Below are positions 48,087-63,995 of a DNA stretch of 64,000 nt, one piece after another. Numbering within the stretch: the stretch's first letter is position 1; each line of letters starts with the position of its first letter. The stretch lies in IMG/VR virus record IMGVR_UViG_3300042560_001323, positions 179,167-243,166 of that record; one strand, given 5' to 3'. The position numbers and the translations under genes were made by a program. The notes beneath the pieces are model-generated. The model was not told the origin of the DNA, ran no database searches, and worked only from the letters and a program-made list of their open reading frames with translations.

Positions 48087-48562
48087 TCAACCAATAGTTG
48101 GGGCTTTTAGAGCAATTTCTTGAGTAGAAACTGCAGCCAAATCTACACTTGACCCATAAGTTTACCATTCTTATGGAGTGGACTATATCATCACCCTTTA
48201 AGGTGTCGGACGCTTATTCCTGTTATTAAGGGAACTATATCCCCCAGGTAGTCTCTGAAGTTTCCTTGAGTGTACTCAAGGCTCACCTGCTGATTGCCCA
48301 TGTTTTTGGGGGGGGGGGTTCCAGCAATTCACCCAGTTTCGTCAATACTCTTACGAGTAAGGGACACCGATTAAAACTTAATGTCCACGGGAGGTGCTGC
48401 AATAAATGCTAAAATAAAGCAAATAGTAGCAGCAAGTAAACAGGGAATCATAAGAACCGAAAAATGCCCAAGATAGAGGCGATTATTCGTACTTGTTACC
48501 CAATTAAGATAACGTTCCCAGAGGTTGTCGCCAGAACGGCGTGTAGCAATTGTAGCAGTCAT
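48087..48562 (-). pseudogene. psbA: psbA remnant: exon 1 (48381-48562, D1 residues 1-60) + group I intron + extreme C-terminal exon (48087-48145); central about 280 codons missing
   Basis: [53 protein letters not shown]; DLAAVSTQEIALKAPTIG* matches the D1 C-terminus. Confidence 0.9.
48146..48380 (-). mobile_element. ORF-less group I intron (235 nt)
   Basis: P AATTGCTGGAA, Q AATCAGCAG, R TTCAGAGACTA, S GATATAGTCC; IGS GTGTCC pairs with exon GGACAT (U-G at splice site); P9 hairpin; P9.0 AC/GT and terminal G at 48146. Confidence 0.88.
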
Positions 48563-48631
48563 ATTTGAAAATAGGGTAGAAAAAGTTCGTAGGGACGAAC
48601 GTGTTTATTATTTCTTCTCACCCCTAGAGAA

Positions 48632-48684
48632 GATATGAGAGACGTATTTGACGTGCAAAGTCTCGGTAAGCACGAGCAGCAATG
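48632..48684 (-). repeat. psbA leader motif (PhotoRC-II-like), copy 1 of a 53-bp direct repeat
   Basis: CATTGCTGCTCGTGCTTACCGAGACTTTGCACGTCAAATACGTCTCTCATATC; 1 mismatch to 49200-49252. Confidence 0.75.
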
Positions 48685-48710
48685 AAGTTTATGTTATTAT
48701 TTTGTAATAA

Positions 48711-51664: not shown

Positions 51665-52336
51665 TTAGGGTGTCCACTCTTCAATAAACTGAGAGAAGGT
51701 CTTATATTCTTTTACCTGGGCAACTTGTACTCGTGTTACAGGGTCCCATTTCGTTGCCCCAAGTGCCCTAGAATACAAACTTCTCCTAGACTTTCTCCCT
51801 TTTTCTGGGTCTTTTGAACCAACCATAACTTCAGCCGCTTTTCCTACAATCTTATCTCCTTTATTACCACCAGACTTTTTAACTTCCTTTGGAATTTCTC
51901 TTACTGCTTGATGATATTCCTTTCCCCTGGAAATTAATTCTTTTGAATCATTTTTTTTAAAATCACCTTTTGGTAAAACGTCTACATTATGAACGCCTCT
52001 TCTCGTTCTGGTGGTTCTTAATTGTCTACGCAGTCTTCTTAAATATAATGCCCTGTCTTGTGTTTTTCTTACTCCTCCTCCATACATACGTTCCTTCTCT
52101 TTACTAGGAAGCATATCCTTTGCATATGCTGATTGAGATGGATACGAAGTAATTGCGGTTTTACTATAATTGTTTTGGTCGTTTGTTGAAGTGAATCTTT
52201 GTCTCTTTCCCCCGGTATGGGTTCTTCTCATACCTGCCCGGCGAAATGCTGCTCTTTCCGATGCATCTTGCCTTTGCCTGGTTGAACCTGCTCGGCTACG
52301 ACTTGGACCAGTTGTGAGTTGTTTTAACTTACCCAT
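51665..52336 (-). CDS. Late basic protein, paralog of 44770-45411, with capsid-targeting-like motif at C-terminus
   Basis: TATAAATA at 52349-52356; ends KEYKTFSQFIEEWTP. Confidence 0.7.
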   Translation of the reverse strand: MGKLKQLTTGPSRSRAGSTRQRQDASERAAFRRAGMRRTHTGGKRQRFTSTNDQNNYSKTAITSYPSQSAYAKDMLPSKEKERMYGGGVRKTQDRALYLRRLRRQLRTTRTRRGVHNVDVLPKGDFKKNDSKELISRGKEYHQAVREIPKEVKKSGGNKGDKIVGKAAEVMVGSKDPEKGRKSRRSLYSRALGATKWDPVTRVQVAQVKEYKTFSQFIEEWTP

Positions 52337-52616
52337 TATTTTTAGTTCTATTTATATTGGGGATATTTGGGTGAATTTTTTGGGCGGGAAATTTTTTTGA
52401 GGACAAGGGGTGTCTTAAGCCATATGGGACCCAATGGTTTTTATTATAAAACGCACTTGGGGGTTAGTATCTTATCGCTAGGCCACGGGGCTAGGCGACG
52501 GGGACGGTAGTACAACTGTCCTATAAGAACTGCTAATAGTACACACATACCCTATACCGACTGCTAGGATCGGCCCCAATAAGATATACCAACCAGGGCC
52601 AACTGCTAATCATACT

Positions 52617-52898
52617 TTACACCCCCAACTCTCCAAGGCGGAGAGCTATCTTATGACGGGCAATCCTGGCCCCATTCAATGTAAACGTAAACCGACGATT
52701 GCCAGCTTGATTAACTTTAATCCGGCAGCCAATCACTACATCAGAAGGAGGATTGCCATGCCCAGTGTATCCCTGGCAGTGATACTCTGCCTCGGCGATC
52801 ATACCATCGCCGCGTAATCCGCCACGATCGAGAGAATCAATAGCAAACTGTTCTGTATCATTAACCTTTGAGATTAGCTCGTTCATTGTAGACAACAT
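52617..52898 (-). CDS. Early-region hypothetical
   Basis: ORF track; -10-like CATTCT just upstream. Confidence 0.55.
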   Translation of the reverse strand: MLSTMNELISKVNDTEQFAIDSLDRGGLRGDGMIAEAEYHCQGYTGHGNPPSDVVIGCRIKVNQAGNRRFTFTLNGARIARHKIALRLGELGV

Positions 52899-52945
52899 GG
52901 CTGAGAATGCGATGGGATTGTGTGAATGAAAGTGTCGCCGATTGT

Positions 52946-53221
52946 TTACATCCTCTCATTACAAACGATGCGGGAAGTATATTGCCGGCCGTCACGGTAG
53001 AATGTTTCAAGATCATCATCCAGTTCTTGAAGAGTATCATTCAAGGTTTCGTATTCTTCTCTTTCAATATAACCAGACTGCAGCATTCCAACATTGCACA
53101 TACCACCAAATACTAGGAACTTTGGTGTTGAAACTACTTCAAAGTATCCTCTTAGAGTCCCAATAATTCCGACATAATCTGCATTGGAGATGTCAACCGC
53201 AGACCATTGTGTGTTGGCCAT
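52946..53221 (-). CDS. Early-region hypothetical (conserved in cyanophages)
   Basis: GGMCNVGMLQSGY...LQEL..DLE.F..DG.QY.S.IVCNERM motif. Confidence 0.65.
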   Translation of the reverse strand: MANTQWSAVDISNADYVGIIGTLRGYFEVVSTPKFLVFGGMCNVGMLQSGYIEREEYETLNDTLQELDDDLETFYRDGRQYTSRIVCNERM

Positions 53222-53287
53222 TGTTCTAACGAAAGGGGAAAGGATTGGAGGTGCCGGGATTATGGCTCCCGGCTGGCCAGAGTGTAA

Positions 53288-53452
53288 CTAACCCTCAATA
53301 AAGTTGGTATGAAAATGCTCTGCAAAATCGCGGGCATCGTCTACATCCATCCGGTTAATCATCTCTCGTGCTACAGTTTCCCACGAGAAATCATCGGCAA
53401 AGCAGATAATGGCACTGCGGGCATCATTTGCATTGAGAGTAGAGAAATCCAT
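53288..53452 (-). CDS. Early-region small hypothetical (MDFSTLNANDAR..I..FAD.FSWETVAREMI.RM..D.ARDF)
   Basis: 54-aa ORF translated manually. Confidence 0.6.
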   Translation of the reverse strand: MDFSTLNANDARSAIICFADDFSWETVAREMINRMDVDDARDFAEHFHTNFIEG

Positions 53453-53556
53453 TGTTTGCACCGGCAACCTGCCGGGGCTGAACTACCCTGTAAGAATACA
53501 GCATCCACAACCGGAACGGTCGGAATAACCGATAAGCATTGCTAATGGTTGAGGAC

Positions 53557-53700
53557 TTGACAGGCTGGGCTGGTTCTGTTATTATAGTTTCATACAAGGA
53601 AACCAGCGCAAGAAGCGCATCATATAAGCGGCCACAATAAACCTGCTCGTTAATAACACTATAAAAAGTATAAAGAAAAGGCCCGCAATCGCGGGCCTGT
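53557..53700 (+). ncRNA. Repeat module A: sigma70 promoter + conserved structured segment + terminator
   Basis: TTGACA-17-TATTAT, GCGC-AAGAA-GCGC hairpin, GGCCACAATAAACCTG, AGGCCCGC-AATC-GCGGGCCT. Confidence 0.6.
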
Positions 53701-53716
53701 AGGGTATGCTGGCAGA

Positions 53717-53851
53717 TCAATCAATCCAGGCCAGCCACGCTGCCGCAACAGCATGGGGAACCATTAGCATCCCGCCCGCGATGGGGCCAGCCGGAACCGC
53801 CAGCACGGCCAGCACGGCGGCGGTGGCAAGCAGGCAATGGCGGCGATTCAT
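53717..53851 (-). CDS. 44-aa hydrophobic peptide (MNRRHCLLATAAVLAVLA...)
   Basis: Manual translation; early-type -10 (TAGGAT) upstream; GC-rich. Confidence 0.5.
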   Translation of the reverse strand: MNRRHCLLATAAVLAVLAVPAGPIAGGMLMVPHAVAAAWLAWID

Positions 53852-53941
53852 GGGAGGAATCCTAAACTGCTCCGCCATCCTACAACATCGGCGGCCAGAT
53901 CAGCCGGATTGAACGATCAGAATTGCTGATCGTTCCAGGGC

Positions 53942-54095
53942 TTGACGGATCGGCCATTCCATCCTATAGTATATTCAACAACGAAAGACGAGCGGGCGAA
54001 CCGCGATGATACAAACGGCCACGTTAATTCTGCCTTCTAATAATAAGAAATGAGGAGATCATCAAGATTCATCGGAGGAACTTTTAAGGTCTCCT
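53942..54095 (+). ncRNA. Repeat module B
   Basis: TTGACG-17-TATAGT, GCGG-GCGAA-CCGC, GGCCACGTTAATTCTG. Confidence 0.5.
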
Positions 54096-54182
54096 AATAA
54101 TAGTCTATTTTAGGCCAGCCGTAGTTAGTGTGTGTGCCAACTGTCAAACCGTCACCAGAGGCACCCAGAAGCCCCTAGAAGG

Positions 54183-54298
54183 TGCTACAATACAGTGAGA
54201 CAAGTAAAGACAGCAGGCGAACCGCATTTATATAAATTAGCACAATAAACCAGCCTTGAGATAATAAAATATAAAGAAAGGCCCGCGATTGCGAGCCC
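54183..54298 (+). ncRNA. Repeat module C
   Basis: Extended -10 TGCTACAAT downstream of palindrome at 54134-54155, GCAG-GCGAA-CCGC, GCACAATAAACCAG, terminator GGCCCGC..GCGAGCC. Confidence 0.5.
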
Positions 54299-54306
54299 AT
54301 TGGTTA

Positions 54307-54738
54307 TCAATAAACCACTTCAATGACGGCACATTGAAGTAAGCCACGGGGTTCAAGTCTGATAGAATCGCCATAATCGGACTTGATGCACGGAATGTTA
54401 TTCCAACCCAGTTCATATTTCACCGCCCGAATGATAGCAAGATCCGTTTTCTTGCCGAGAATTGGCACCTCAAACCTCCTATCGGTGGTGTTCACTTCAC
54501 CACCAAATAATCCGTAAACAGTAACCATAACCGATGGCACTTGTTCATAGCTGATACTATCAACACAATAATTGGCATAATCTGTTACTGCCTCCACTAT
54601 ATCATCCTCCCCATCAACAATGAATACCTTATTGCTAAACCTTTTATTGTAGTCTGTGGTTTTTTCTTGAGTGAGTTCTTCATCTTCACAGTCGGTGCTA
54701 AAGTCGAACTCAACTTTGGTGATTCTGTAAGCTGGCAT
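54307..54738 (-). CDS. Early-region hypothetical
   Basis: ORF track. Confidence 0.6.
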   Translation of the reverse strand: MPAYRITKVEFDFSTDCEDEELTQEKTTDYNKRFSNKVFIVDGEDDIVEAVTDYANYCVDSISYEQVPSVMVTVYGLFGGEVNTTDRRFEVPILGKKTDLAIIRAVKYELGWNNIPCIKSDYGDSIRLEPRGLLQCAVIEVVY

Positions 54739-54828
54739 TGATCCGAATCTGAATGTCCCACTAACAATAAACTGTTTTCGTCAGTGTGTCAATGGTTGTT
54801 TGATAAGCATTACTGATCATTCGGGGGC

Positions 54829-54975
54829 TTGACATACTGGATTGGTTCGGTTATTATAGTTTCATACAAAGAAAACCAGCGGAAGAACCGCTACAAATAA
54901 GAGGCCACGATAAACCTGTCTTTCATTATTAGAATATAAACAATACAAAAAGGCTTCCAGATTGGAAGCCTTTAT
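54829..54975 (+). ncRNA. Repeat module D
   Basis: TTGACA-17-TATTAT, GCGG-AAGAA-CCGC, GGCCACGATAAACCTG, AAGGCTTCC-AGATT-GGAAGCCTT. Confidence 0.6.
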
Positions 54976-55402
54976 TATATTTTAGGAGTTGACTAATTGT
55001 TATAGTCAACCCCACAGACTTACCGGCAGTCAGTGATAACGACGGTCATTGGGCGGGGGCGTGCCAATGCAGCCGGAACACCATTTGGGCGGTAAACCGG
55101 GCGGGGGGCAGGTTGACGGACAGGGCGGGGGGTGAGTGTGGCAGCCATGGGGGGTGATAGGCTTGGAACTCCATCATCCTACACCACAGACCGCCAAACC
55201 GTCAACCAATCGGGGGCCATTGGTCAGAAAATGCTCACACTAGGACGGTTTCATAGATTATCGGTGATTCTATCCGACTGACAGAACCATCCTACCTGGC
55301 TAGCCAGAACACCACAAAAACCAAAAGTATAATAAAACCCGCAGACAATAAAAAGGCCAGGGTTATTAACTCCCTGGCGCCGGTTATACTGGAGCCCGAA
55401 AA

Positions 55403-56059
55403 TCACTCCGGGAACTGCGAAGAATATGAAGGAAGTATGTTTACTTTCATACAATGTTCAAACGGAATATCACCTTCCATAGGATTGAACACATACCATT
55501 CGTGGTCCCTCTGGAATAACTGACAACCGCAATAACGCATCAGGATTCTATTCATTCGCTCTTTAGTTGAGCGGCTCCTTTTAATAGGATCATATAGTGT
55601 TACTCTTCCTAATACAGGAGCATAAAGGGCAATTAGCTTACCATGATGCATAAAATGAATCAGCTCAAAGATAGAGCCTACATCCGTAGCCTTAATTTCA
55701 TCGTTATTTTTCTTATAGTTGACACGATTCTCAGCATAGAATATCATCGTCTTGATACAATCTGCCCCGCCGCGATCGTTCATAAGATCCTGGCGTTGTT
55801 GCCAGTGTTTGATCTTAAGAACCGCCTCGTAATACTCTGTGAAGCATAGACGCTCGGCCCCATCTTTATTCAACCGAGTATAACCAGCCGTGCGGACTTT
55901 CTCTCCTTTAGTATAATGAAATGCCTTGTGGTGCGCTAGAAGAGTAGAACCCGTGAGGCGTTTCTGTGGAAACTCTATAGGCAGTTGCTCCATAGGAGCC
56001 TGGCGAAACATTACAGGCGGAAAGGTGCGGGTGATAAGATCCATCTGGGAAACCGGCAA
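55403..56059 (-). CDS. Early-region hypothetical
   Basis: ORF track; flanked by repeat modules. Confidence 0.6.
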   Translation of the reverse strand: MPVSQMDLITRTFPPVMFRQAPMEQLPIEFPQKRLTGSTLLAHHKAFHYTKGEKVRTAGYTRLNKDGAERLCFTEYYEAVLKIKHWQQRQDLMNDRGGADCIKTMIFYAENRVNYKKNNDEIKATDVGSIFELIHFMHHGKLIALYAPVLGRVTLYDPIKRSRSTKERMNRILMRYCGCQLFQRDHEWYVFNPMEGDIPFEHCMKVNILPSYSSQFPE

Positions 56060-56150
56060 CCTGCCGGTGCTTTGTTTGCCTGCTTATCCTACAGCATCGG
56101 CAAGCATTCCGGCCGTTTCCGTTGATAAGCACTACTAATGGTTCGGGGTC

Positions 56151-56295
56151 TTGACAGACAGTGTTGAATGGGTTATTATAGTTTCATACAAGGAAACCAG
56201 CGCAAGAAGCGCATCATATAAGCGGCCACAATAAACCTGCTTCTTAATAAGAAAATATAACATATAAAGAAAGGGGAAGGAATGCTCCCTCCCCG
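56151..56295 (+). ncRNA. Repeat module E
   Basis: TTGACA-17-TATTAT; 70 nt (56172-56241) identical to 53578-53647. Confidence 0.6.
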
Positions 56296-56302
56296 GTTAT
56301 AC

Positions 56303-56686
56303 TCAGTCTGCAATCGTCGGACATTTAATACCTTCCCACGCCCTTGAATAATTATCAATAACCTTGTCAATGAGTGATTCTAGCTTAGGGTGATAAGTGT
56401 AATCACAGACAATCTCTTCCGGTTCATGGTCGAGAACAATCCACAATCTAGCCCGCATTCCGTCTTTGTTAATGTAGACTGTGGCCGCATCTACTGAAAC
56501 TACAATATCTGTAGCAGCATGGCGGATTTTTGTATTAGATTGCTCTTGGTCAATCTTGATAGTCTCCTCGCCATCATTTACAGCAGTGATAGCGAATCCT
56601 TCCTGTTGAAACTTGGCAAGAAGAGACCTAACGGGAACCGACCAATTAAAAGCCGTTTGGAAAGGTTCCAATTTGTGGCTAGCCAT
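56303..56686 (-). CDS. Early-region hypothetical
   Basis: V.DGEE.......A...I.SVD...Y......WIVL....EEIVCDY pattern. Confidence 0.65.
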   Translation of the reverse strand: MASHKLEPFQTAFNWSVPVRSLLAKFQQEGFAITAVNDGEETIKIDQEQSNTKIRHAATDIVVSVDAATVYINKDGMRARLWIVLDHEPEEIVCDYTYHPKLESLIDKVIDNYSRAWEGIKCPTIAD

Positions 56687-56746
56687 GATGTAATTCCTGA
56701 AGACTCTTTAAGAATACCAGAATTGAGAGACCGGGGCTCTTAGTGT

Positions 56747-56768
56747 GTGCCAGTTCAACAACTGGCAC
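56747..56768. promoter_or_regulatory. Perfect copy of early-promoter palindrome GTGCCAGTT-N4-AACTGGCAC
   Basis: Degenerate copies at about 51654, 54134, 58752, 59128, 59554, 60269, 60769, 61783, 63370, each about 30-45 nt from a -10 box. Confidence 0.7.
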
Positions 56769-56813
56769 ACACAGCCTGCTTTTGCTGCTCACATAAATAA
56801 TACCAAAAAACCT

Positions 56814-56987
56814 TTAATTGTTCCAGGAATGAATACGCTTCCGGCGGCCGTCTTCCTGGATTTCCCATAGATTGCCGCGCCATACATTAAACCCGTAGGC
56901 ATAATGTAGGTTACCGGTAGTGATCTTAAACCTTTTTCCCTTCCGGTCGATTCCGGTGATAACGTAGCTGGTGGCGGGAGTTGCCAT
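56814..56987 (-). CDS. Conserved phage hypothetical (MATPATSYVITGIDRKGKRFKI...)
   Basis: 57-aa ORF translated manually with promoter leader TATTGTATGAAGGTCAACC. Confidence 0.65.
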   Translation of the reverse strand: MATPATSYVITGIDRKGKRFKITTGNLHYAYGFNVWRGNLWEIQEDGRRKRIHSWNN

Positions 56988-57241
56988 GGTCTGTGGTGCG
57001 GTTGACCTTCATACAATAGCACCGGGAAGCCCGACCCGTCAAGCATCTGTCAGCGATTGCCCACACTTGAGCGGAAACTCTTTTTATCGTAGATTCTGGC
57101 GGAACCGATGGGCTATCCTACCCTTGCCACCAGAATACGAAAAAACAGAAAGTATAGTAAACCATTGGCCATTCTTAATTACAATAAAAAGGGCCAGAGG
57201 GATTCTTATATCCCCCGGCCCGTTATACTATCGGTTAGGTA

Positions 57242-57931
57242 TCACCGTGCCCCACACAATGCACGGGTTTGGCTACCTGATGTTTGACGATGTAGACTTG
57301 CATTCGCTCCAGCACTGGAGCCTAATTGAGCGGCAATTCCACTAGCCCGAGATGTACGATGGGTCCGAAGTTTAAGACGAGCGATCACTACTGCAGTGTG
57401 TTCCTTATCGGGATGATCCGCACGATTGAGTTTCATTTCATACAACCGATCTCGCACCATGGCTGCGTATTGTTTACAGAAATTGGATCGGAATCCGTAG
57501 GCACTATAGGAATTGCCCTTCAATTCTGCTAATACCTTCTCACCAGCAATTGCAGTCTCACACTCCCGGATCATACAACCCTTCAGGAAATCGTAGTATA
57601 AACGAACCTGAATCTGTTGCGCCTCTGTGCCAATACACTTAAGAGTTGTAACCTTCCTTCCAGTTTGATGGCTAGGGCTGGACATACCGAGAGCATCATA
57701 AAACCGGGCGATTGCACAAAAAAGAATAAGATGCGATTCGTCAAGTTTCTTATAAGTCTCAAACGCTTCAGTAAGAACCTCAGGTGTATTGACATCATCA
57801 ATTGTTACACCGTGTTGTTTACACAGTTTATCAATAAGTGTGGCGGCAGCATTAGCCTCGCCATCAAAACCAGTTGATTCTTGCAGCCTGAGCATGGCTG
57901 AAATTTTCTTAAGAATGGCTTGACGATCCAT
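57242..57931 (-). CDS. DUF2786-domain protein
   Basis: MDRQAILKKISAMLRL..ST.F.GEA.AA...I.KL..QH N-terminal motif; start reassigned to ATG 57931 after the leader motif. Confidence 0.75.
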   Translation of the reverse strand: MDRQAILKKISAMLRLQESTGFDGEANAAATLIDKLCKQHGVTIDDVNTPEVLTEAFETYKKLDESHLILFCAIARFYDALGMSSPSHQTGRKVTTLKCIGTEAQQIQVRLYYDFLKGCMIRECETAIAGEKVLAELKGNSYSAYGFRSNFCKQYAAMVRDRLYEMKLNRADHPDKEHTAVVIARLKLRTHRTSRASGIAAQLGSSAGANASLHRQTSGSQTRALCGAR

Positions 57932-58022
57932 TGATCTGTGGTGCGGTTGACCTTCATACAATAACCGATTAGGAGCCCTTTGAAAGGGTTTCATTGATTA
58001 GCAATGCTTATTGTTCTAAGGC

Positions 58023-58155
58023 TTGACATACTGGCTGGAATCTGTCATACTGTATTCAACAGGCGGAAGAACCGCGACAGATAAAGTGACACAATAAGCC
58101 TGCTTCTTAATAAAATATACAGAATAAAGAAAGGGGAAGGATTATTCCCTCCCCG
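58023..58155 (+). ncRNA. Repeat module F
   Basis: TTGACA-17-CATACT, CAGGCGG-AAGAA-CCGC...GACACAATAAGCCTG, GGGGAAGG..CCCTCCCC terminator. Confidence 0.6.
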
Positions 58156-58183
58156 ATAAGTATGAGAATCGTTTTAGTATTGC

Positions 58184-58417
58184 TTATGCATACCAGTTTG
58201 CGGCAATTTCCTTTGCATTGTCTCCAAGAAAAATATGAAAAGCACGATTAGGTGATCTACCGAGAATTTGACAACAGCGTTTCAATTCGTCTCCATCCGC
58301 TTGCACTTGGACGTAGGCTTCATAAGCCATATTGACGGTTGATGCTAAACCATTGTCGCCAATGTGGCCGTTTACATTATAATTTGAATGGCTGGCACAT
58401 GTAGTGAAGAAAATCAT
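58184..58417 (-). CDS. Early-region hypothetical
   Basis: ORF track. Confidence 0.5.
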   Translation of the reverse strand: MIFFTTCASHSNYNVNGHIGDNGLASTVNMAYEAYVQVQADGDELKRCCQILGRSPNRAFHIFLGDNAKEIAANWYA

Positions 58418-58468
58418 TGAAGGGAAGCGATTGGGTTGGAAAGGAAACCGGGAAACTTCTTGTTGTAA

Positions 58469-58690
58469 TCAATAGGCGTGAAATACCTCTAGGATCTTAC
58501 CGTTTTGAACAATCTTGGCATGAGGATAGAATACCCATTTTGAACCAACATTGTTGATTGCATCATAAGCATCTTCTAATGTTTCGTAAACCCCATCTCT
58601 AACTTGTTCATCATCGTCATTGAAAAAGTAAACAATTAGATCATCTTCTGAAACCAAATTGGCGGGTCTTTTGTTGAAAAAGGTGAACAT
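58469..58690 (-). CDS. Early-region hypothetical
   Basis: ORF track; leader ATTCATAAGTCACC. Confidence 0.55.
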   Translation of the reverse strand: MFTFFNKRPANLVSEDDLIVYFFNDDDEQVRDGVYETLEDAYDAINNVGSKWVFYPHAKIVQNGKILEVFHAY

Positions 58691-58842
58691 TGGATGCCTG
58701 GGGGTGACTTATGAATAATAGGGCACCTAGAAGCCTCTCTAGGTGCCGCTGGTGACACTTATTAAGCTGGCACACTAGCCCTTGACTTCAGGACAGAATA
58801 GAGAAAGGGGAAGGATTGCTCCCTCCCCGATAAGTATGAGAT

Positions 58843-59051
58843 TCAATAACAACCATACCCCATTAGCATAATTTCCTGTCCGATTAACTGTTCACAATCT
58901 CCACTTTCTTTGGCATCATTGGTGGTAACGGTGTACCTAATTGGCCCGAGATTGATTTCCCTTGGATGACCGCCGCCGTTAAATCCATCCAAAATCATTA
59001 TTTCGTGATTCGGACCTTTGAGTAAACGTTGAGCGAGTTCGTGGGCTTTCA
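58843..59051 (-). CDS. Early-region hypothetical (probable start MKAHELAQRLL)
   Basis: Upstream part of the tracked ORF overlaps the promoter motif, so start reassigned (approximate). Confidence 0.55.
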
Positions 59052-59154
59052 TTTTCAGCTCAGAAAAGTGGGTGACTTGTATAGAATACCCGTTTATCGG
59101 GTTAAGTGTTGGAAGTGTTGGAAGTGTGCGCCAGTTGTTTAACCGGCACATTGT

Positions 59155-59493
59155 TCAGCTAATTGCAAACTCCATATTATCTTCAAACTCTCCTTTATCA
59201 CAATACCATACATAATCCTTCTGGAAGATTCCACCCAGGTTGTAATGATGCAGGATAGAATTCAACCGACTTTTGGTTGTTTTTGTCGCCCAACCACAAG
59301 AAGAAAGAATCATCTTATTGCCAGGGAAGATGCTGGCAATCTTATGGCCGTGAAGTTTAACTTGAATCTCCTTTTGATAAGAATGTGTCCCGTGAATGCC
59401 ATTGTGAACAACCTCTACTGATGTGTTATCTTTCCGCCAATCGGTCTCATTTGAGATGGCTCGGATCATCTGTTGCTCAATGATGCGAGACAT
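59155..59493 (-). CDS. Conserved cyanophage early hypothetical
   Basis: IEQQM..AI.....W...NT.V...LHGHKIA...GW.TKTTKSRLN motif. Confidence 0.75.
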   Translation of the reverse strand: MSRIIEQQMIRAISNETDWRKDNTSVEVVHNGIHGTHSYQKEIQVKLHGHKIASIFPGNKMILSSCGWATKTTKSRLNSILHHYNLGGIFQKDYVWYCDKGEFEDNMEFAIS

Positions 59494-59599
59494 TGCGGTT
59501 GGAGCTGCTTACTTGTATAGAATACCAGGATTGAAGCCTTGTGCTCCTATTGTGTGCCAGTTGTTGAACCGTCCACCTGGCCGGTTAAACCGTCTTAAT

Positions 59600-59713
59600 T
59601 CGTGCCATACTGTATTCATTGGGCGGAAGAACCGCGACAGATAAAGAGCCACAACAAACCTGCCGTTTTATAGTCATATAAATAATACCAAAAAGCCTCC
59701 AATAAGGAGGCTA
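59600..59713 (+). ncRNA. Repeat module G
   Basis: TG-C-CATACT extended -10, GGGCGG-AAGAA-CCGCGACAGATAAAGAGCCACAACAAACCTG, AGCCTCC..GGAGGCT terminator. Confidence 0.55.
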
Positions 59714-59740
59714 ATGGAGTTAAAATTCAAATAACAAAAT

Positions 59741-60207
59741 TCAATAAGAAACACACCGGACGGAACGCACACAGTAAGTGCTGCTCTTGTAGTTGGTGTA
59801 GTGGTAACCACTATTGGAGAAGCGGATGCCACAAGCGCAAGACGCATTGAACTCGCTAGAACTCCAATAGCTTGCCTTATTAAATTCATTAGGAATTACT
59901 TTATATGCAAGTTTCAGTTGTTCTACTGAAGGGATAAACCATTGAGACTTATTAAACCCTTCTTCCGCAAGTCTATCAAAGACTTCTGAGAACTCTTTGG
60001 ACCACTTACAATTAACTTCCGTCGATTTCGGTGCAACAAGAAGGGCAAGACCGTTTTCTTTCTTTAGAACAATTGAACCGTCTTCAAGGGTATCACCAAC
60101 GACGGCTTCTTGAATGGTTGGTGTTTTTTATTCAGTTGTTCCTTTAGTCTACTCAGTTGTTCTTCGGTTTCTTGAATAGACTTAAGGAGTTGTTGCTTGG
60201 TGTTCAT
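59741..60207 (-). pseudogene. DUF1566/C-type-lectin-like protein, copy 1, frameshifted in an A-run at about 60125
   Basis: MNTKQQLLKSIQETEEQLSRLKEQLNKK then -1 frame TPTIQEAVVGDTLEDG...WFIPSVEQL...YWSSSE...CVRSVRCVSY. Confidence 0.75.
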
Positions 60208-60488
60208 TTGAAAAACAGTGGTTGACTTGTATAGAATACCAGATTATCATTCCCCGTCTTGCTCTACTGTGCCAGTTCTTATTGTGACACAATAATCCAA
60301 ATAATCACTATTTGATTTTCTACCATCCCTCAAATAAGACGTAACAATGACGGGCACCATATCGGGCCACTTATATGCCCCAGTATCCTCTAGACCTTCG
60401 GATACGCCAGTAACTTCTACTTAACCGCCGTCTGGGGTTTTGTAGATCTTAGTGCCAAACTGTTTTGCTGCAGAAGGACTATAAAATG

Positions 60489-60707: not shown

Positions 60708-60914
60708 CAGTGGTTGGAGCGGTTGACTCTTATAGAATACCAGAATCTGTGGCCTGGGGGGAGTCGGTGTGCCAGTTTGTTGGCCGGCTGGGGGTTCTTT
60801 ATACTTTGTGATTTTTCGGTGATTCTATTTGCGGGCGGGTGTTCGTGTGCATTTGGTGCAGGGTTGTTGATCGTTTTATATAAGGCGGGCCAAGTCCACT
60901 AAGACTGGCCACAC

Positions 60915-61154
60915 GAGAACTATTTTTAATAAGAGAGAACTATTTTTAATAAGAGAGAACTATTTTTAATAAGAGAGAACTATTTTTAATAAGAGAGAAC
61001 GGATTTTAATAAGAGAGAACGGATTTTAATAAGAGAGAACGGATTTTAATAAGAGAGAACTATTTTTAATAAGAGAGAACTATTTTTAATAAGAGAGAAC
61101 TATTTTTAATAAGAGAGAACTATTTTTAATAAGAGAGAACTATTTTTAATAAGA
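60915..61154. repeat. Tandem array of 20-bp units TATTTTTAATAAGAGAGAAC (11 full units, three with GGATTTT variant) plus degenerate flanks to about 61305
   Basis: Directly visible periodicity. Confidence 0.95.
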
Positions 61155-61800
61155 AGAAATGACTATAAACAGTTTACAATAAGACTAGCCAACATAAAAT
61201 GACTTTTAATAAGAAGGAATAGCTATAAACAGTTTACACTAAGACCGGCCACACAATAATGACTTTTAATAAGATATACCAACTAAGAATGGTTCTCAAT
61301 AAGATACTTTTGGATACTATCCAAAAACACCATAAAAAACAATAATAAACGATTAAACAATAAAAAATGACCATTTTTAGTGGTCATTTTAGATAAATTC
61401 AAAACGGCACACTGTTATACGCAACCTTAAACATCATACAGCATCCTGTGCAGATTGCTCACTATACATAACAGCTCGAGCTGATTGATTGGCTGGATTA
61501 TCCTGAACTAAAGGTTCGTGCCATTCACCAGCACAAGGAGTTTCGTCAGTGAAACTCAACACAAACTTATCTGGGTTCTTAAGATAAGATTACAGAACCC
61601 GTGCTTTCATCGTATCAGAATAGGCATGAAATGTTAGAGGGTGTTGAATTTTATCAAATCCAGATTCAACAATAGACTTAGTGGAAATACCACCAATGAT
61701 TTGCACCTTGATTGTTTTCATTGTCTTTGTGTGGTTGACTTCGTTAGTTTAGGCTATGTTCTGGTTGGTTTGGTGGTCGCTTGTGCCAGTTTATTGACTG

Positions 61801-62337
61801 TCACGGTACAAATTCTACCCTATTATTAATATGTTCTTGCAACAACAATCTCCAATTTGTGAGTCCTTGTTTTATCTTTTCATTATAGTCTTCAATAAGA
61901 TAAGAATCAATTACTGTAATCTTTTTCTCGAGATACCAGAAGTGTGCATCTGTTGGATTACGGAATTCTTTCTCTAATCTCTTTCCGTTTCTATTTTTAC
62001 ATCCTGCACGATAGCATTTGTTTGCAGTATGATAATGGACTCCTAACGGCAGTTCACCTCTATCATTATGACGAAGAGTAAACAATGAATTGAGTGCTAG
62101 TGGTAAGAATAAACAGGTTTCTGCTGAATAAATCTTATTTCTTGGAAATAGCAAATCTTTATCTAATTGCCACCCGTCAACATAATTCTCATCAAACCAT
62201 ACTTTATAGTTGGAGAGTGTATGCCATTCTTCACTGACAGTACAACCAATGTATGTTGGTCTTTTTATATGAAAGGAAGGTGAATAACACCTTATAAAAA
62301 TACTCTTCCAAGAATTATAAAGTTTTTTATCTGCCAT
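61801..62337 (-). CDS. Putative HNH-type phage endonuclease (start MADKKLYNSW)
   Basis: RPTYIGCTVSEEW...F.ENYV.GWQLDKDLL....KIYS.ETCLFLP..LNSLF...LP.GV motif; start reassigned from 62481. Confidence 0.65.
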   Translation of the reverse strand: MADKKLYNSWKSIFIRCYSPSFHIKRPTYIGCTVSEEWHTLSNYKVWFDENYVDGWQLDKDLLFPRNKIYSAETCLFLPLALNSLFTLRHNDRGELPLGVHYHTANKCYRAGCKNRNGKRLEKEFRNPTDAHFWYLEKKITVIDSYLIEDYNEKIKQGLTNWRLLLQEHINNRVEFVP

Positions 62338-62338
62338 T

Positions 62339-63031
62339 TCAATAAGAAACACACCTGAAAGCCCGCACACAGAGAGCGTTGCTCTTGGTGATGTTCTGGG
62401 TACGATTATTGAAGTAGACGTGACAAGAGAAAGGGGCAGTGTTCTCGCTAGAACTCCAATACCATACCCTATTAAATTCATCAGGAATTACTTTATGTGC
62501 AAGTTTCAGTTGTTCTACTGAAGGGATAAACCATTGAGAAGAAATAAACCCTTGTTCTGTAAGTTTATCGAAGACTTCTGAAAATTCCTTGGACCACTTA
62601 CAATTAACTTCCGTTGATTTGGGTGCAACCACCAGGGCAAGACCGTTTTCTTTTTTAATAACAATTGAACCGTCTTCAAGGGTATCACCTACTTCTGCAT
62701 TTTCAATTGTAGGTGCCTTTTTGGATTTAAGTTGTTCCTTTAGTCTACTCAGTTGTTGTTCAGTGTCCTTAATAGACTGGAGCAGTTGTAGTTTAGGCTG
62801 TGTTTTTACGATCATTACAATGTCCATTGGGTGTTCGTAATCGTAATTGTAATCGTAATTGTAGACATAATTTCCTTCTGCGGTCCAAGTTTCAGTCCCC
62901 CATAATACTTCCATTTTGAATGGATAGACACTTCCATTTGTGTGTGCCTTAATGATGCCCGTAAGAACTTCACCGTTGCGTAGAGTAATCCTTACTTCGG
63001 TGTTGAGGAATTTGGAGAGATTGATAGTCAT
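62339..63031 (-). CDS. DUF1566/C-type-lectin-like protein, copy 2, with extra N-terminal domain
   Basis: WFIPSVEQL...WYWSSSE...CVRAFRCVSY; start reassigned to MTINLSKF. Confidence 0.75.
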   Translation of the reverse strand: MTINLSKFLNTEVRITLRNGEVLTGIIKAHTNGSVYPFKMEVLWGTETWTAEGNYVYNYDYNYDYEHPMDIVMIVKTQPKLQLLQSIKDTEQQLSRLKEQLKSKKAPTIENAEVGDTLEDGSIVIKKENGLALVVAPKSTEVNCKWSKEFSEVFDKLTEQGFISSQWFIPSVEQLKLAHKVIPDEFNRVWYWSSSENTAPFSCHVYFNNRTQNITKSNALCVRAFRCVSY

Positions 63032-63380
63032 TTGGTGTTGTTGGGTGAACAGAGCAAGACCTAGCTCAAAATGAAACCAATCGGCTTCATAGGCCTCGTA
63101 AGTTTGGTAGGATGAGCGGTTTTTCTTGACATTTTCGATGCAAAATTCTAGGGAATCTTTTGTGTAGTAAGATGCACTAGCAAACGGTTTGGTACACATT
63201 GCCAGGCCGTCTTTAGTCAGTTGCCAATTGCCCAGTTGCCCAGTTGCATTAGAACCACTCGGAGGAATGTTTAGTATTACAGGTAAATCAATATTCTGCG
63301 GAAGTCATTGTTCGGTAGCAGTGAACGTTTGTATTCTACGGGTAACGGATGCCAGTCCTAGTTGCCATTGTGCCAGTTAA

Positions 63381-63995
63381 TCAACCGGCCGCAAAACCTT
63401 CAAACATCGGTAGAAAAACAGGTTTCTCAATACCTCCAATTAGTTCATAAGTGGCAGACCCGGCGGCAGACCCGGCGGCATCCCAGGCGGCATCCCCGGC
63501 GGCAGACCCGGCGGCATTCCTGGCGGCATACCAGGCGGCAGACCCGGCGGCATTCCTGGCGGCAGACCAGGCGGCATAGTCTAGGGCGCGGTAGCGGCGG
63601 GCAACTTCTTTCCATTGGTCGGCAGTAAGACTATCCATGAACCACCAGAAGTTAAGGACCGCCCGGTAGTTCTTGCCGATGTATTTCTTGGGATTGGTTA
63701 GAACATCAGACGGGGCTCCAGGTTCACCATCGTTAATTCTGCGAAGAAGAACCGAATGTGCAACTGAAATACCGAGCAGTCGGGCAACTTCTTGGTCGGC
63801 TTTAGATTGTTCGGTGTTGCGGAGCTGTTCCTCGCTATAACCGCCAATCTTGTATAGTACCTGACCTTGAGCACACATACAGGTTGTTGGTTCTTTACCA
63901 TCTTTAGGTGGTTCACTGGAGATAAGACTATTCTTAAAGGGGATGTTGCGGGGATCTTCCCAGAAAGCCAGAAGTGTTTCGGCTGCGGTGTTCAT
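63381..63995 (-). CDS. Hypothetical with AAxx tetrapeptide repeats
   Basis: 10 x GCCGCCNGGNNT units; paralog of 49307-49969. Confidence 0.75.

Follow-up and report, generated by a model that had tools for sequence, protein, structure and literature searches.

Conserved units with backward-facing promoters and a predicted non-coding RNA module between the early genes of a large cyanobacterial virus

The window, the whole stretch of 64,000 nucleotides analysed here (positions 179,167 to 243,166 of IMG/VR record IMGVR_UViG_3300042560_001323), contains a cluster of small early genes on the minus strand, as shown by Pfam hits to Kyano_Gp96 and DUF2786 and by PHROG hits. Between these genes, at 53.5-59.7 kb and in a region of distinct GC content, lie seven copies of a conserved unit on the plus strand, each with a sigma70-type promoter that points backwards towards the end of the preceding gene. 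The units and the neighbouring elements are as follows.

53528..53700, plus strand: unit 1, with an upstream block at 53528-53556, -35 TTGACA at 53557-53562, -10 TATTAT at 53580-53585, a predicted start at about 53592, hairpin GCGC-AAGAA-GCGC at 53606-53618, motif at 53630-53645, an AT-rich stretch at 53646-53678 and the mirror of the terminator at 53679-53698.
53913..54096, plus strand: unit 2, with -35 TTGACG at 53942-53947, -10 TATAGT at 53965-53970, hairpin GCGG-GCGAA-CCGC at 53992-54004 and a motif variant at 54017-54032; it has no canonical terminator and lies in tandem with unit 3, with no gene between them.
54165..54300, plus strand: unit 3, the most degenerate copy, with no -35, TGn + TACAAT at 54183-54191, hairpin GCAG-GCGAA-CCGC with one A·C mismatch at 54213-54225, a motif variant at 54238-54253 and the mirror of the terminator at 54279-54298.
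54800..54980, plus strand: unit 4, with an upstream block at 54800-54828, -35 at 54829-54834, -10 at 54852-54857, hairpin at 54879-54891, motif at 54903-54918 and a hairpin at 54949-54973 that scores as a terminator on both strands (folding z -5.4 for the unit).
56122..56296, plus strand: unit 5, with -35 at 56151-56156, -10 at 56174-56179, hairpin at 56200-56212, motif at 56224-56239 and the mirror of the terminator at 56273-56294.
57994..58156, plus strand: unit 6, of a short class with the hairpin about 5 nt after the predicted start, with -35 at 58023-58028, TGn + CATACT at 58043-58051, hairpin at 58063-58075, a motif variant at 58087-58102 and the mirror of the terminator at 58133-58154.
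59575..59714, plus strand: unit 7, also of the short class, with no -35, TGn + CATACT at 59603-59611, hairpin at 59623-59635, a motif variant at 59647-59662 and the mirror of the terminator at 59694-59712.
58759..58839, plus strand: a half unit, in which only the A-rich tract and the terminator mirror (58807-58828) are present, with no promoter, hairpin or motif.
54764..54792, minus strand: an example of the forward (gene-strand) promoter, TTGACA-17-TATTGT, back to back with the unit 4 promoter and driving the gene 54738..54307.
57932..57963, minus strand: forward promoter and leader of the DUF2786 gene (TATTGT, 6 nt, GTCAACC, then ATG at 57931), divergent from unit 6; the same layout is seen at 56987-57018 and in the more distant relative L238.

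The first-pass annotation, made from the sequence alone, had described these seven units as a dispersed family of promoter, motif and terminator opposite the early genes, and this observation is confirmed. All seven promoters lie on the plus strand. TTGACA-17-TATTAT is found at 53557, 54829 and 56151 (11 of 12 matches to consensus), TTGACG-17-TATAGT at 53942 and TTGACA-17-CATACT at 58023 (10 of 12), so that five have the 17-bp spacing that had been claimed. The units at 54183 and 59600 lack a -35 but carry extended -10 elements, TGn + TACAAT and TGn + CATACT. Minus-strand intrinsic terminators face six of the seven units (53698..53679, 54298..54279, 54973..54949, 56294..56273, 58154..58133 and 59712..59694), the exception being the unit at 53942. 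The claim that no open reading frame fits also holds, as no conserved ORF fits the units. The RNA length of 110-130 nt given in the annotation is however corrected to 97-119 nt, as predicted from the -10 elements and hairpin ends.

The motif GGCCACAATAAACCTG, searched with up to 3 mismatches, gave 6 hits against 0.41 expected, 5 of them in units, while the other two units carry more divergent versions. The hairpin pattern GCGNNNGAMNCGC gave 6 hits against 0.14 expected, all in units and all on the plus strand; the seventh unit reads GCAG...CCGC. The seven units align at 66% mean column identity and a profile search recovers them with E values of 1e-27 to 1e-42. A covariance model finds exactly these seven in the window, at 55-72 bits. 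The identical run of 70 nt noticed between two units is exact, 53578-53647 in unit 1 being equal to 56172-56241 in unit 5.

The family extends beyond the window. The covariance model gave 63 hits at 51-80 bits in 12 contigs of related cyanomyoviruses. Seventeen of the hits are in contigs that were not used to build the model (L236 and L237), and none were found in the contigs L238 and L239 or in the marine phage S-SM1. In the seven contigs where gene direction was checked, 52 of 55 units lie opposite to the genes. Four copies in relatives precede real genes as a 5' leader, a natural reporter: an HNH_3 endonuclease ORF in the relative L013 starts about 80 nt after the predicted start of one unit and on the strand of the unit, and UvrD-like helicase genes are preceded by a co-oriented unit in three genomes.

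Comparison of copies indicates that the promoter is selected on the strand of the unit. In an alignment of 45 copies the second position of the -10 is A in 43 copies and the sixth is T in 42, the exceptions being misaligned copies, while the hexamers themselves vary (TATTAT, CATACT, TAGAAT, TAGGAT, TATAAT and others). TGn is present in 25 copies, 17 of which lack TTGAC. The conserved part downstream of the promoter consists of a 4-bp GC hairpin with an NNGAA loop, an A-rich linker and an unstructured CCAC-N7-CTGYC motif, followed by an AT-rich stretch and the mirror image of the terminator of the neighbouring gene. The predicted folds have a 5' hairpin, an open middle and a 3' hairpin.

The hairpin is supported at the RNA level, although the covariation is limited to one base pair. 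Of the cells 99.4% are paired, against 87.5% in shuffles, and the closing pair is GC in 27, CG in 11, AU in 5 and UG in 2 copies. The covariation score is 0.284 against 0.056, a value reached by 0 of 500 shuffles, and slid controls fall to 17-63% paired. The two U·G pairs would be C·A on the gene strand, whereas the A·C mismatch in one copy would be a G·U pair on the other strand, so the strand call from wobble pairs is 2 against 1. The loops in the 45 copies are AAGAA, GCGAA, ACGAA, CCGAA or ACGAC.

The relative L238 lacks the hairpin but keeps the layout of backward promoter, short unit and terminator. In this contig 9 of the 10 best sigma70-type sites are TTGACA-16-TGnTAGAAT on the antisense strand, each followed by CCAAC-N7-CTGTC (13 hits against 1.2 expected), an AU-rich stretch and the reversed terminator. 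The forward promoters there score only 9 of 12. The distance of the motif from the promoter differs between the clades, being about +35 in the window clade and about +1 in L238.

Gene order and content differ between the window and the relatives L012 and L013, with units at the joints, and unit 6 is a mosaic of three units of L012.

No Rfam family is matched. A search of the whole window against Rfam 15 at gathering scores gave only a group I intron and PhotoRC-II near 48 kb, with nothing in 53-60 kb, and searches by E value gave only hits below threshold. Two units gave full-length matches to RsmY (RF00195, clan CL00106), at 30.6 bits (window 53597-53700) and 28.2 bits (L013 8166-8266) against a gathering score of 57, and other units gave no hit. 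These matches rest on a GCGC-AGGAA-GCGC-like hairpin plus a terminator. RsmY, RsmZ and CsrB share with the units a single-stranded 5' end, a 4-bp GC hairpin with a purine pentaloop, an unstructured middle and a terminator hairpin, but the loop of the units is never GGA and there is one hairpin per unit rather than several GGA hairpins.

The PeSL (promoter-early stem-loop) cassettes of T4-like phages (Arbiol 2010; Comeau 2014, PMC4122927) are likewise repeated elements of terminator and sigma70-type promoter between small genes of a hyperplastic region, conserved within a genome, with degraded and half copies, and associated with insertions, replacements and reordering of ORFs between close relatives. 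Recombination between PeSL copies would excise circles or delete the intervening DNA. Six of the seven units combine a gene-strand terminator hairpin and a promoter with 10-11 of 12 matches within about 170 bp, and they lie next to ORFs that differ between relatives. In a PeSL, however, the stem-loop lies just upstream of a promoter that points at the next gene and is followed by its Shine-Dalgarno sequence and start codon (PMC4122927, Fig. 3 legend). Here the consensus promoter points the other way, at the stem-loop, and precedes a conserved non-coding module of 45 nt, while a second, weaker forward promoter serves the next gene. The units are therefore not canonical PeSLs.

The lambda OOP RNA (77 nt), like phage cis-antisense RNAs in general (table in PMC12197685), is made from a host-type promoter convergent with a gene and is complementary to the 3' end of its mRNA. 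The sequence anatomy of six of the seven window units and of most units in relatives fits this arrangement. OOP is a single gene with one known target (cII), whereas here there are 7-11 paralogous copies per genome, each facing a different gene and sharing a 5' module that has no counterpart in OOP. A terminator working in both directions would have its hairpin flanked by an A-tract and a U-tract, but the terminators look built for the gene strand: at least 5 A precede the hairpin in 20 of 24 scored units, at least 5 T follow it on the unit strand in only 7 of 24, and in the window only 54949-54973 is scored on both strands. The CfrI RNA of the cyanomyovirus S-PM2 (PMC2984593) is a non-coding antisense RNA in a T4-like cyanophage linked to a homing-endonuclease gene, as one unit here is linked to an HNH gene, but it is a single RNA of about 225 nt opposite psbA / F-CphI, is not a repeated family, and no sequence similarity to the units was found.

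The interpretation in the first-pass annotation, early RNAs made in multiple copies, is partly supported. The dispersed, non-coding family on the strand opposite the early genes, the covarying hairpin and the absence of an Rfam match hold, and comparative data strongly support active promoters on that strand. The conserved 16-mer is however unstructured and is really a bipartite CCAC-N7-CTGYC signature. The functions it proposed (anti-defence protein decoy, replication primer or antisense regulator) could not be told apart, and since the module is also the 5' leader of four protein-coding genes it is a portable promoter-leader rather than a dedicated sRNA body. Its alternative, PeSL-like cassette borders, is also partly supported by the shuffled gene order and the mosaic unit.

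The explanation preferred, held with no more than even confidence, is that each unit is a small transcription unit read by the unmodified host RNA polymerase with the primary sigma factor early in infection, running backwards from the bidirectional promoter region that separates two early gene cassettes. Cyanomyovirus early genes are thought to use unmodified host polymerase with sigma70-like promoters (PMC2984593). The RNA would start 5-18 nt before the hairpin, continue through the linker, the motif and an A/U-rich stretch, and reach the mirror image of the preceding gene's intrinsic terminator. Where that hairpin also stops polymerase in this direction, the product would be a non-coding RNA of roughly 100-120 nt with its last 30 nt or so perfectly complementary to the 3' end of the neighbouring mRNA; where it does not, the RNA would continue as an antisense transcript of that gene. 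The conserved 5' part would be a shared handle for stability or for a binding partner. The most likely role would be post-transcriptional, acting on the convergent early mRNAs or on a common host or phage RNA-binding factor. As a side effect or second function, the 60-130 bp of near-identical sequence at every cassette border would give homologous recombination the patches by which gene cassettes are shuffled, as proposed for PeSLs. The family and its spread, its orientation, selection on the promoter, the hairpin, the predicted folds, the genes led by units, the layout in L238 and the shuffling are demonstrated by the sequence comparisons, whereas transcription, the RNA products and their role are inferred. 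Weighing against this view, only one base pair covaries, the terminators look built for the gene strand, the distance of the motif from the promoter differs between clades, the unstructured bipartite motif with its variable 7-nt core fits a DNA-binding site as well as an RNA site, no complementary target was found in the phage sequences, and strong antisense transcription concurrent with sense early transcription would seem costly.

The other explanations considered are all unlikely on present evidence. The least improbable is that many copies of an abundant early RNA act as decoys, displaying the loop and the single-stranded motif to soak up a host or phage RNA-binding protein or ribonuclease, as RsmY, RsmZ and CsrB do for CsrA, with the leader copies on helicase and HNH mRNAs regulated by the same protein. 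The RsmY matches below threshold, the G and A invariant in the loop in 45 copies, the strong promoters of a multi-copy family, the unstructured conserved motif and the presence of the module on mRNAs agree with this. The loop however never has the GGA that is the defining CsrA contact, there is only one hairpin per RNA, L238 units lack it altogether and no candidate binding protein was identified. Nearly as likely is a purely DNA-level recombination cassette of the PeSL type, copied between cassette borders, with a backward promoter that is incidental or a relic of inverted early promoters. The position of units at every border, the permuted gene order, the mosaic unit, the 70-nt run, the tandem units 2 and 3, the half unit and the distinct GC content all fit. 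Incidental promoters would decay, though, and instead the -10 positions are kept while hexamers diverge, TGn is frequent where TTGAC is missing, the backward promoters are the best consensus promoters of the region in two clades, the hairpin pair covaries and 52 of 55 units share the orientation.

Slightly less likely again, the bipartite element could be a strand-specific DNA site for a protein, separate from the product of the promoter, such as an operator or roadblock that shuts off the backward promoters or a site for a nicking or recombination enzyme. Its half-sites lie one helical turn apart around a free 7-bp core, it is strongly strand-biased (for example 13 to 1 in L238 and 13 to 1 in L012, against about 1.2-1.5 expected), it has no conserved RNA structure, and in L238 it overlaps the predicted start site, a typical operator position. 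Its position relative to the promoter is not fixed between clades, no cognate protein was identified, and the existence of the promoters would remain unexplained. R-loop replication origins or primers like T4 oriF/oriG, in which a transcript from a host-polymerase promoter stays hybridised at an AT-rich unwinding element and primes leading-strand synthesis, are doubtful. The resemblance is anatomical only: the minimal T4 origin of about 100 bp has a promoter with a sigma70 -10 and an A+T-rich downstream element, and its transcript need not code (PMC3016281), while in the units a 30-45 nt AT-rich stretch follows the promoter at about +55 to +95. The predicted RNA is purine-rich across this part, and a 12-copy array of 20-nt iteron-like repeats at 60915-61158, 1.2 kb away, is reminiscent of T4 oriE. 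T4 origins are however single and dispersed with no shared sequence motif, seven to eleven origins within 6-9 kb have no precedent, R-loop formation in T4 is not sequence-specific so that the hairpin and motif are unexplained, and the module also serves as an mRNA leader. Least likely are helper promoters, in which backward transcription makes local negative supercoiling or recruits polymerase to fire the weak forward promoter of the next gene on freshly injected linear DNA. The two promoters are back to back, about 60-100 bp apart, and the forward ones are poor (9 of 12, weak -35) where the backward ones are near consensus, but this explains neither the conserved transcribed module nor the covarying hairpin, and a short untranslated RNA gives little rotational drag.

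The unit recurs 63 times in related viral contigs, so it is most likely an undescribed multi-copy family of short non-coding or antisense RNAs. A further-reaching possibility, tentative and judged less likely than not, is that a lineage of large cyanomyoviruses devotes the strongest host-type promoters of its early region to such a family and not to genes, with 7-13 copies per genome, each antisense to the 3' end of one early gene and all carrying the shared CCAC-N7-CTGYC signature. This would be a previously unrecognised layer of phage early regulation, in which the RNAs might stabilise or silence each early mRNA, or might also divert a host factor such as RNase E in a host that lacks Rho and classical Hfq function.

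The source contig, IMG/VR record IMGVR_UViG_3300042560_001323, is 243,166 bp long, with the window as its last 64 kb, and it belongs to a T4-like cyanophage. Proteins of the region hit Pfam Kyano_Gp96 and DUF2786 and several PHROGs, and almost all ORFs of 90 aa or more are on the minus strand. The stretch 52000-60000 has a GC content of 0.42-0.47, against 0.32-0.40 in the rest of the window except its last 2 kb at 0.44, which suggests that the cassette region has a different history or different constraints from the structural genes. It is a run of small genes upstream of the baseplate module, which is the kind of hyperplastic early region known from T4-like phages. A group I intron and a PhotoRC-II RNA at 48.1-48.7 kb both score above the Rfam gathering thresholds, and this fits an intron-containing psbA region, as in S-PM2. 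In addition to the repeated units the following features were found in the window.

48154-48390, minus strand: group I intron (66 bits).
48600-48687, minus strand: PhotoRC-II RNA (52.7 bits).
53470-53484 and 56052-56068, minus strand: an identical perfect hairpin, CCGGCA-GGT-TGCCGG, just upstream of two minus-strand start codons, with no obvious Shine-Dalgarno sequence.
55250-55400 and 57100-57230: a second, shorter family of intergenic cassettes, in which an AGTATAAT / AGTATAGT element is followed within about 30 nt by a gene-strand terminator and then CGGTTATACT; it has neither the hairpin nor the motif of the units and may be a truncated relative of them.
56702-56768, 59064-59147, 59500-59573, 60214-60248, 60715-60788, 61782-61804 and 63369-63391: repeated forward-promoter and leader blocks upstream of minus-strand genes, reading TGGCACAC ... 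GGTATTCTATACAAGTCAACC on the gene strand, just before the start codons (repeat families D10, D12, D14, D15 and D17-D19).
59793-60092 versus 62385-62684, and 60131-60198 versus 62727-62794: direct repeats of 300 nt and 68 nt, 83-84% identical and 2.6 kb apart, which point to paralogous genes within the region (repeat families D3, D13 and D16).
60915-61158 (flanks to about 60875-61300): a non-coding tandem array of 12.2 copies of a 20-nt unit (GAGAACTATTTTTAATAAGA, 96% matches), with degenerate TTTTAATAAGA repeats at 60-nt spacing beside it.
63453-63576: a 12-nt (36-nt super-period) tandem repeat, GGCAGACCCGGC, inside the minus-strand ORF 63381-63995, which would encode a short proline/glycine-rich peptide repeat.

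Everything observed in the first-pass annotation is present in the sequence. Five promoters on the plus strand have 17-bp spacing, three of them TTGACA/TATTAT with 11 of 12 consensus matches and the other two TTGACG/TATAGT and TTGACA/CATACT with 10 of 12. Minus-strand intrinsic terminators face six of the seven units. The conserved 16-mer occurs 6 times at up to 3 mismatches, against 0.41 expected, and the hairpin pattern occurs 6 times, against 0.14 expected, always on the plus strand and always in a unit. The seven units align over about 165 nt at 66% identity, and the conservation extends about 30 nt upstream of the -35 in a GATAAGCAYTRCTAATGG block (repeat family D7). The 70-nt identical run between units 1 and 5, which lie 2.6 kb apart, is exact. 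A profile search and a covariance model search both find these seven units and nothing else in the window. The predicted RNAs, taken from 7 nt after the -10 to the end of the hairpin, are 97-119 nt. The interpretation in that annotation, a candidate small-RNA family, is partly supported.

Outside the source contig the family was found in related viral contigs only. Megablast and blastn searches with the 6.7-kb region against 50,697 phage records found no match among isolated phages. Scans of IMG/VR with three motif patterns found true units only in the source contig, the other nine-locus hits of the first pattern being chance matches, and a protein-based scan also found only the source contig. 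A single pattern scan of 185,579 species genomes for a host homologue gave 101 hits, of which none was cyanobacterial and none was confirmed by the profile. Homologues of the DUF2786 protein led to the related large contigs designated L012 (243 kb), L013 (237 kb), L236 (116 kb) and L237 (15 kb). One metagenome pattern scan returned mostly chance hits but also brought in seven further contigs that carry true units. The covariance model gives 63 hits at 51-80 bits in 12 contigs, 17 of them in two contigs that were not used to build it; because only part of the metagenome hits was covered, the family is larger than the 63 copies counted. In the seven contigs where gene direction was checked, 52 of 55 units lie on the strand opposite to the genes, directly after the 3' end of a gene.

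The alignment of 45 copies shows which strand carries the promoter. The -10 hexamer varies (TATTAT, CATACT, TATACT, TAGAAT, TAGGAT, TATAAT, TACAAT, TATTGT and others), while position 2 is A in 43 copies and position 6 is T in 42, the exceptions being the misaligned helicase-leader copies. TG at -15/-14 is present in 25 copies, 17 of which lack TTGAC. This is the signature of selection on a sigma70-type promoter read on the unit strand. A reading of the units on the gene strand was rejected, because no consistent -35/-10 could be placed on the minus strand across copies and the invariant A...T spacing reads as TAnnnT only on the unit strand, the same columns giving AnnnTA on the gene strand. 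A natural experiment agrees with this. In L013 an HNH_3 endonuclease ORF on the strand of the unit begins about 80 nt after the predicted start, directly behind the hairpin and motif. This free-standing homing-endonuclease gene (L013 8714-9211, minus strand) is inserted on the antisense strand behind the leader of a unit, its 3' end overlaps that of a Kyano_Gp96 gene by about 10 nt, and the usual AT-rich stretch and terminator are missing there. In L012, L013 and L237 a co-oriented unit, back to back with an ordinary antisense unit, precedes a UvrD-like helicase gene. As judged from these sequences, the promoter plus module is therefore a working expression cassette, and in the other 59 copies it has no ORF behind it.

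RNAalifold on the 45 copies predicts one element only in the putatively transcribed part, the 4-bp hairpin. Three of its pairs are essentially invariant, and the closing pair is G:C in 27 copies, C:G in 11, A:U in 5 and U·G in 2. Compared with shuffles, 99.4% of cells are paired versus 87.5%, and the covariation score is 0.284 versus 0.056, a value reached by 0 of 500 shuffles, while sliding the partner drops pairing to 17-63%. The statistic is honest but thin, because only one pair varies and the copies are related. On the gene strand the two U·G pairs become C·A, whereas the one A·C mismatch (unit 3 of the window) becomes G·U, so that wobble pairs favour the unit strand only 2 to 1. The loop always has G and A at positions 3 and 4. 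The rest of the conserved core, an A-rich linker followed by CCAC-N7-CTGYC, is unstructured in every fold and shows no covariation. A closing CAGG/CCTG helix and a helix flanking the motif were also tested, but they are not predicted and the flanking positions do not covary. Downstream lie 30-45 nt of A/T-rich sequence with a recurring TATAAAS-R-ATAAA tract, and then the mirror image of the terminator of the neighbouring gene. That terminator is built for the gene strand, with an A-tract preceding the hairpin in 20 of 24 scored units and a T-rich tail following on the unit strand in 7 of 24. Only 54949-54973 is scored as a terminator on both strands in the window.

Other readings of the conserved module were not upheld. 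An ATG-initiated 15-codon frame, which could give a small peptide, exists only in the 'ATGATACAA' subclass, and other subclasses carry in-frame stops. As for a trans target in the phage, no site complementary to the motif with up to 3 mismatches lies outside the units, and complementary 7-mers are not enriched near gene starts. A GGCAGGTTGCC hairpin in two 5' UTRs gives only a 7-nt match; seven nucleotides of the perfect hairpin at 53470-53484 and 56052-56068 are complementary to the unit motif, which could be chance. An analogy with lambda nut/boxB was dropped since only the GCGAA loops fit a GNRNA pentaloop and AAGAA does not. CUAAUCCUG is complementary to 16S rRNA, but the copies in the window do not conserve it and this reading was also dropped.

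The layout is conserved more deeply than the module itself. L238 is a 117-kb contig whose DUF2786 protein is 53% identical and which the covariance model does not match, yet nearly every intergenic region there has the same layout on the antisense strand. It consists of CTTGACA, 16 nt, TGnTAGAAT and then CCAAC-N7-CTGTC starting about 5 nt after the -10, followed by an AU-rich stretch with the same TATAAAC-N-ATAAA tract and the reversed terminator. Nine of the ten best sigma70-type sites in that locus are these antisense promoters (11-12 of 12, all with TG), while the forward promoters of the genes (TTGCCA-17-CATACT, then GTCAACC, a Shine-Dalgarno sequence and ATG) score 9 of 12. The bipartite signature is strongly strand-biased in most of these loci, for example 13 to 1 in L238 and 13 to 1 in L012, against about 1.2-1.5 expected by mononucleotide shuffle. 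The bias is weak in the L123 locus, at 5 to 4, where several units carry GCAC variants that the pattern misses. In the marine isolate S-SM1 the homologous region has short intergenic spacers and no excess of promoter-like sites (40 found, 38.2 expected), its best sites are on the gene strand, and the bipartite signature is absent from the antisense strand. The arrangement of terminator, short backward unit and backward promoter, followed by forward promoter and gene, is therefore a lineage trait older than the hairpin-motif module and not a general property of cyanomyoviruses.

PeSLs are defined as a stem-loop just upstream of a sigma70-like early promoter that is followed by the Shine-Dalgarno sequence and start codon of the next gene (PMC4122927). 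The units share with them the composite terminator-plus-promoter nature, the location and the association with shuffling. The homologues of the 77-aa and 102-aa genes of the window sit in different places in L012, and the helicase and HNH genes are present in relatives but absent here. Unit 6 of the window is 83-93% identical to one L012 unit region in its promoter half and to another in its terminator half. The units fail the orientation criterion and are therefore not classified as PeSLs, although the L238 cassettes contain a canonical forward PeSL-type promoter as well as the backward one. The units match no Rfam family at gathering score. Two of them give full-length but sub-threshold RsmY matches (28-31 bits against 57), which rest on a GCGC-AGGAA-GCGC-like hairpin and the terminator, and the defining GGA is never present. 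The nearest functional analogue is lambda OOP, a short RNA convergent with cII and complementary to its 3' end, and CfrI is the only antisense RNA shown in a T4-like cyanophage (PMC12197685 and PMC2984593). Neither is a repeated family with a shared 5' module.

The anatomy also resembles the minimal T4 R-loop origin, a promoter plus an AT-rich downstream element (PMC3016281). The 12-copy 20-nt array at 60915-61158 lies 1.2 kb away, looks iteron-like and recalls T4 oriE, and similar sequence is present in L012 and L013 as seen with tblastx. However, a cluster of 7-11 origins with a conserved transcribed motif that doubles as an mRNA leader is hard to reconcile with that model. Besides an R-loop origin, the explanations competing with the preferred one are a decoy RNA, recombination alone, a DNA site and a helper promoter.

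The sequence comparisons establish the family, its orientation, selection on the promoter, a conserved small hairpin, use of the module as an mRNA leader, conservation of the layout in a more distant clade, and mosaicism at the units. That host polymerase makes short RNAs from the units early in infection, and that these end at or run through the reversed terminator, is inferred from sequence alone. Their 3' part would therefore pair with the 3' end, or the body, of the convergent early mRNA. It is likewise an inference that the 5' module is a shared handle for stability or for a binding partner. Transcription from these promoters is considered quite probable, while it is only somewhat more likely than not that the RNA rather than the DNA is the selected entity, and the combined explanation is about as likely to hold as not.

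For practical use, the units are compact, apparently strong, terminator-bounded promoter modules for cyanobacterial hosts. The family would extend the PeSL picture of how T4-like genomes shuffle accessory genes to a group where PeSLs had been judged unlikely to act (PMC4503421). Only one antisense RNA, CfrI, has been shown experimentally in T4-like cyanophages, and early regulation in these viruses, which lack the T4 Alt/Mod/MotA/AsiA machinery, is poorly understood. The family would give a defined RNA and motif to test for partners such as RNase E or other RNA-binding proteins. A conserved, orientation-locked family of backward transcription units at every early cassette border would show that non-coding transcription is a built-in part of early gene cassettes.
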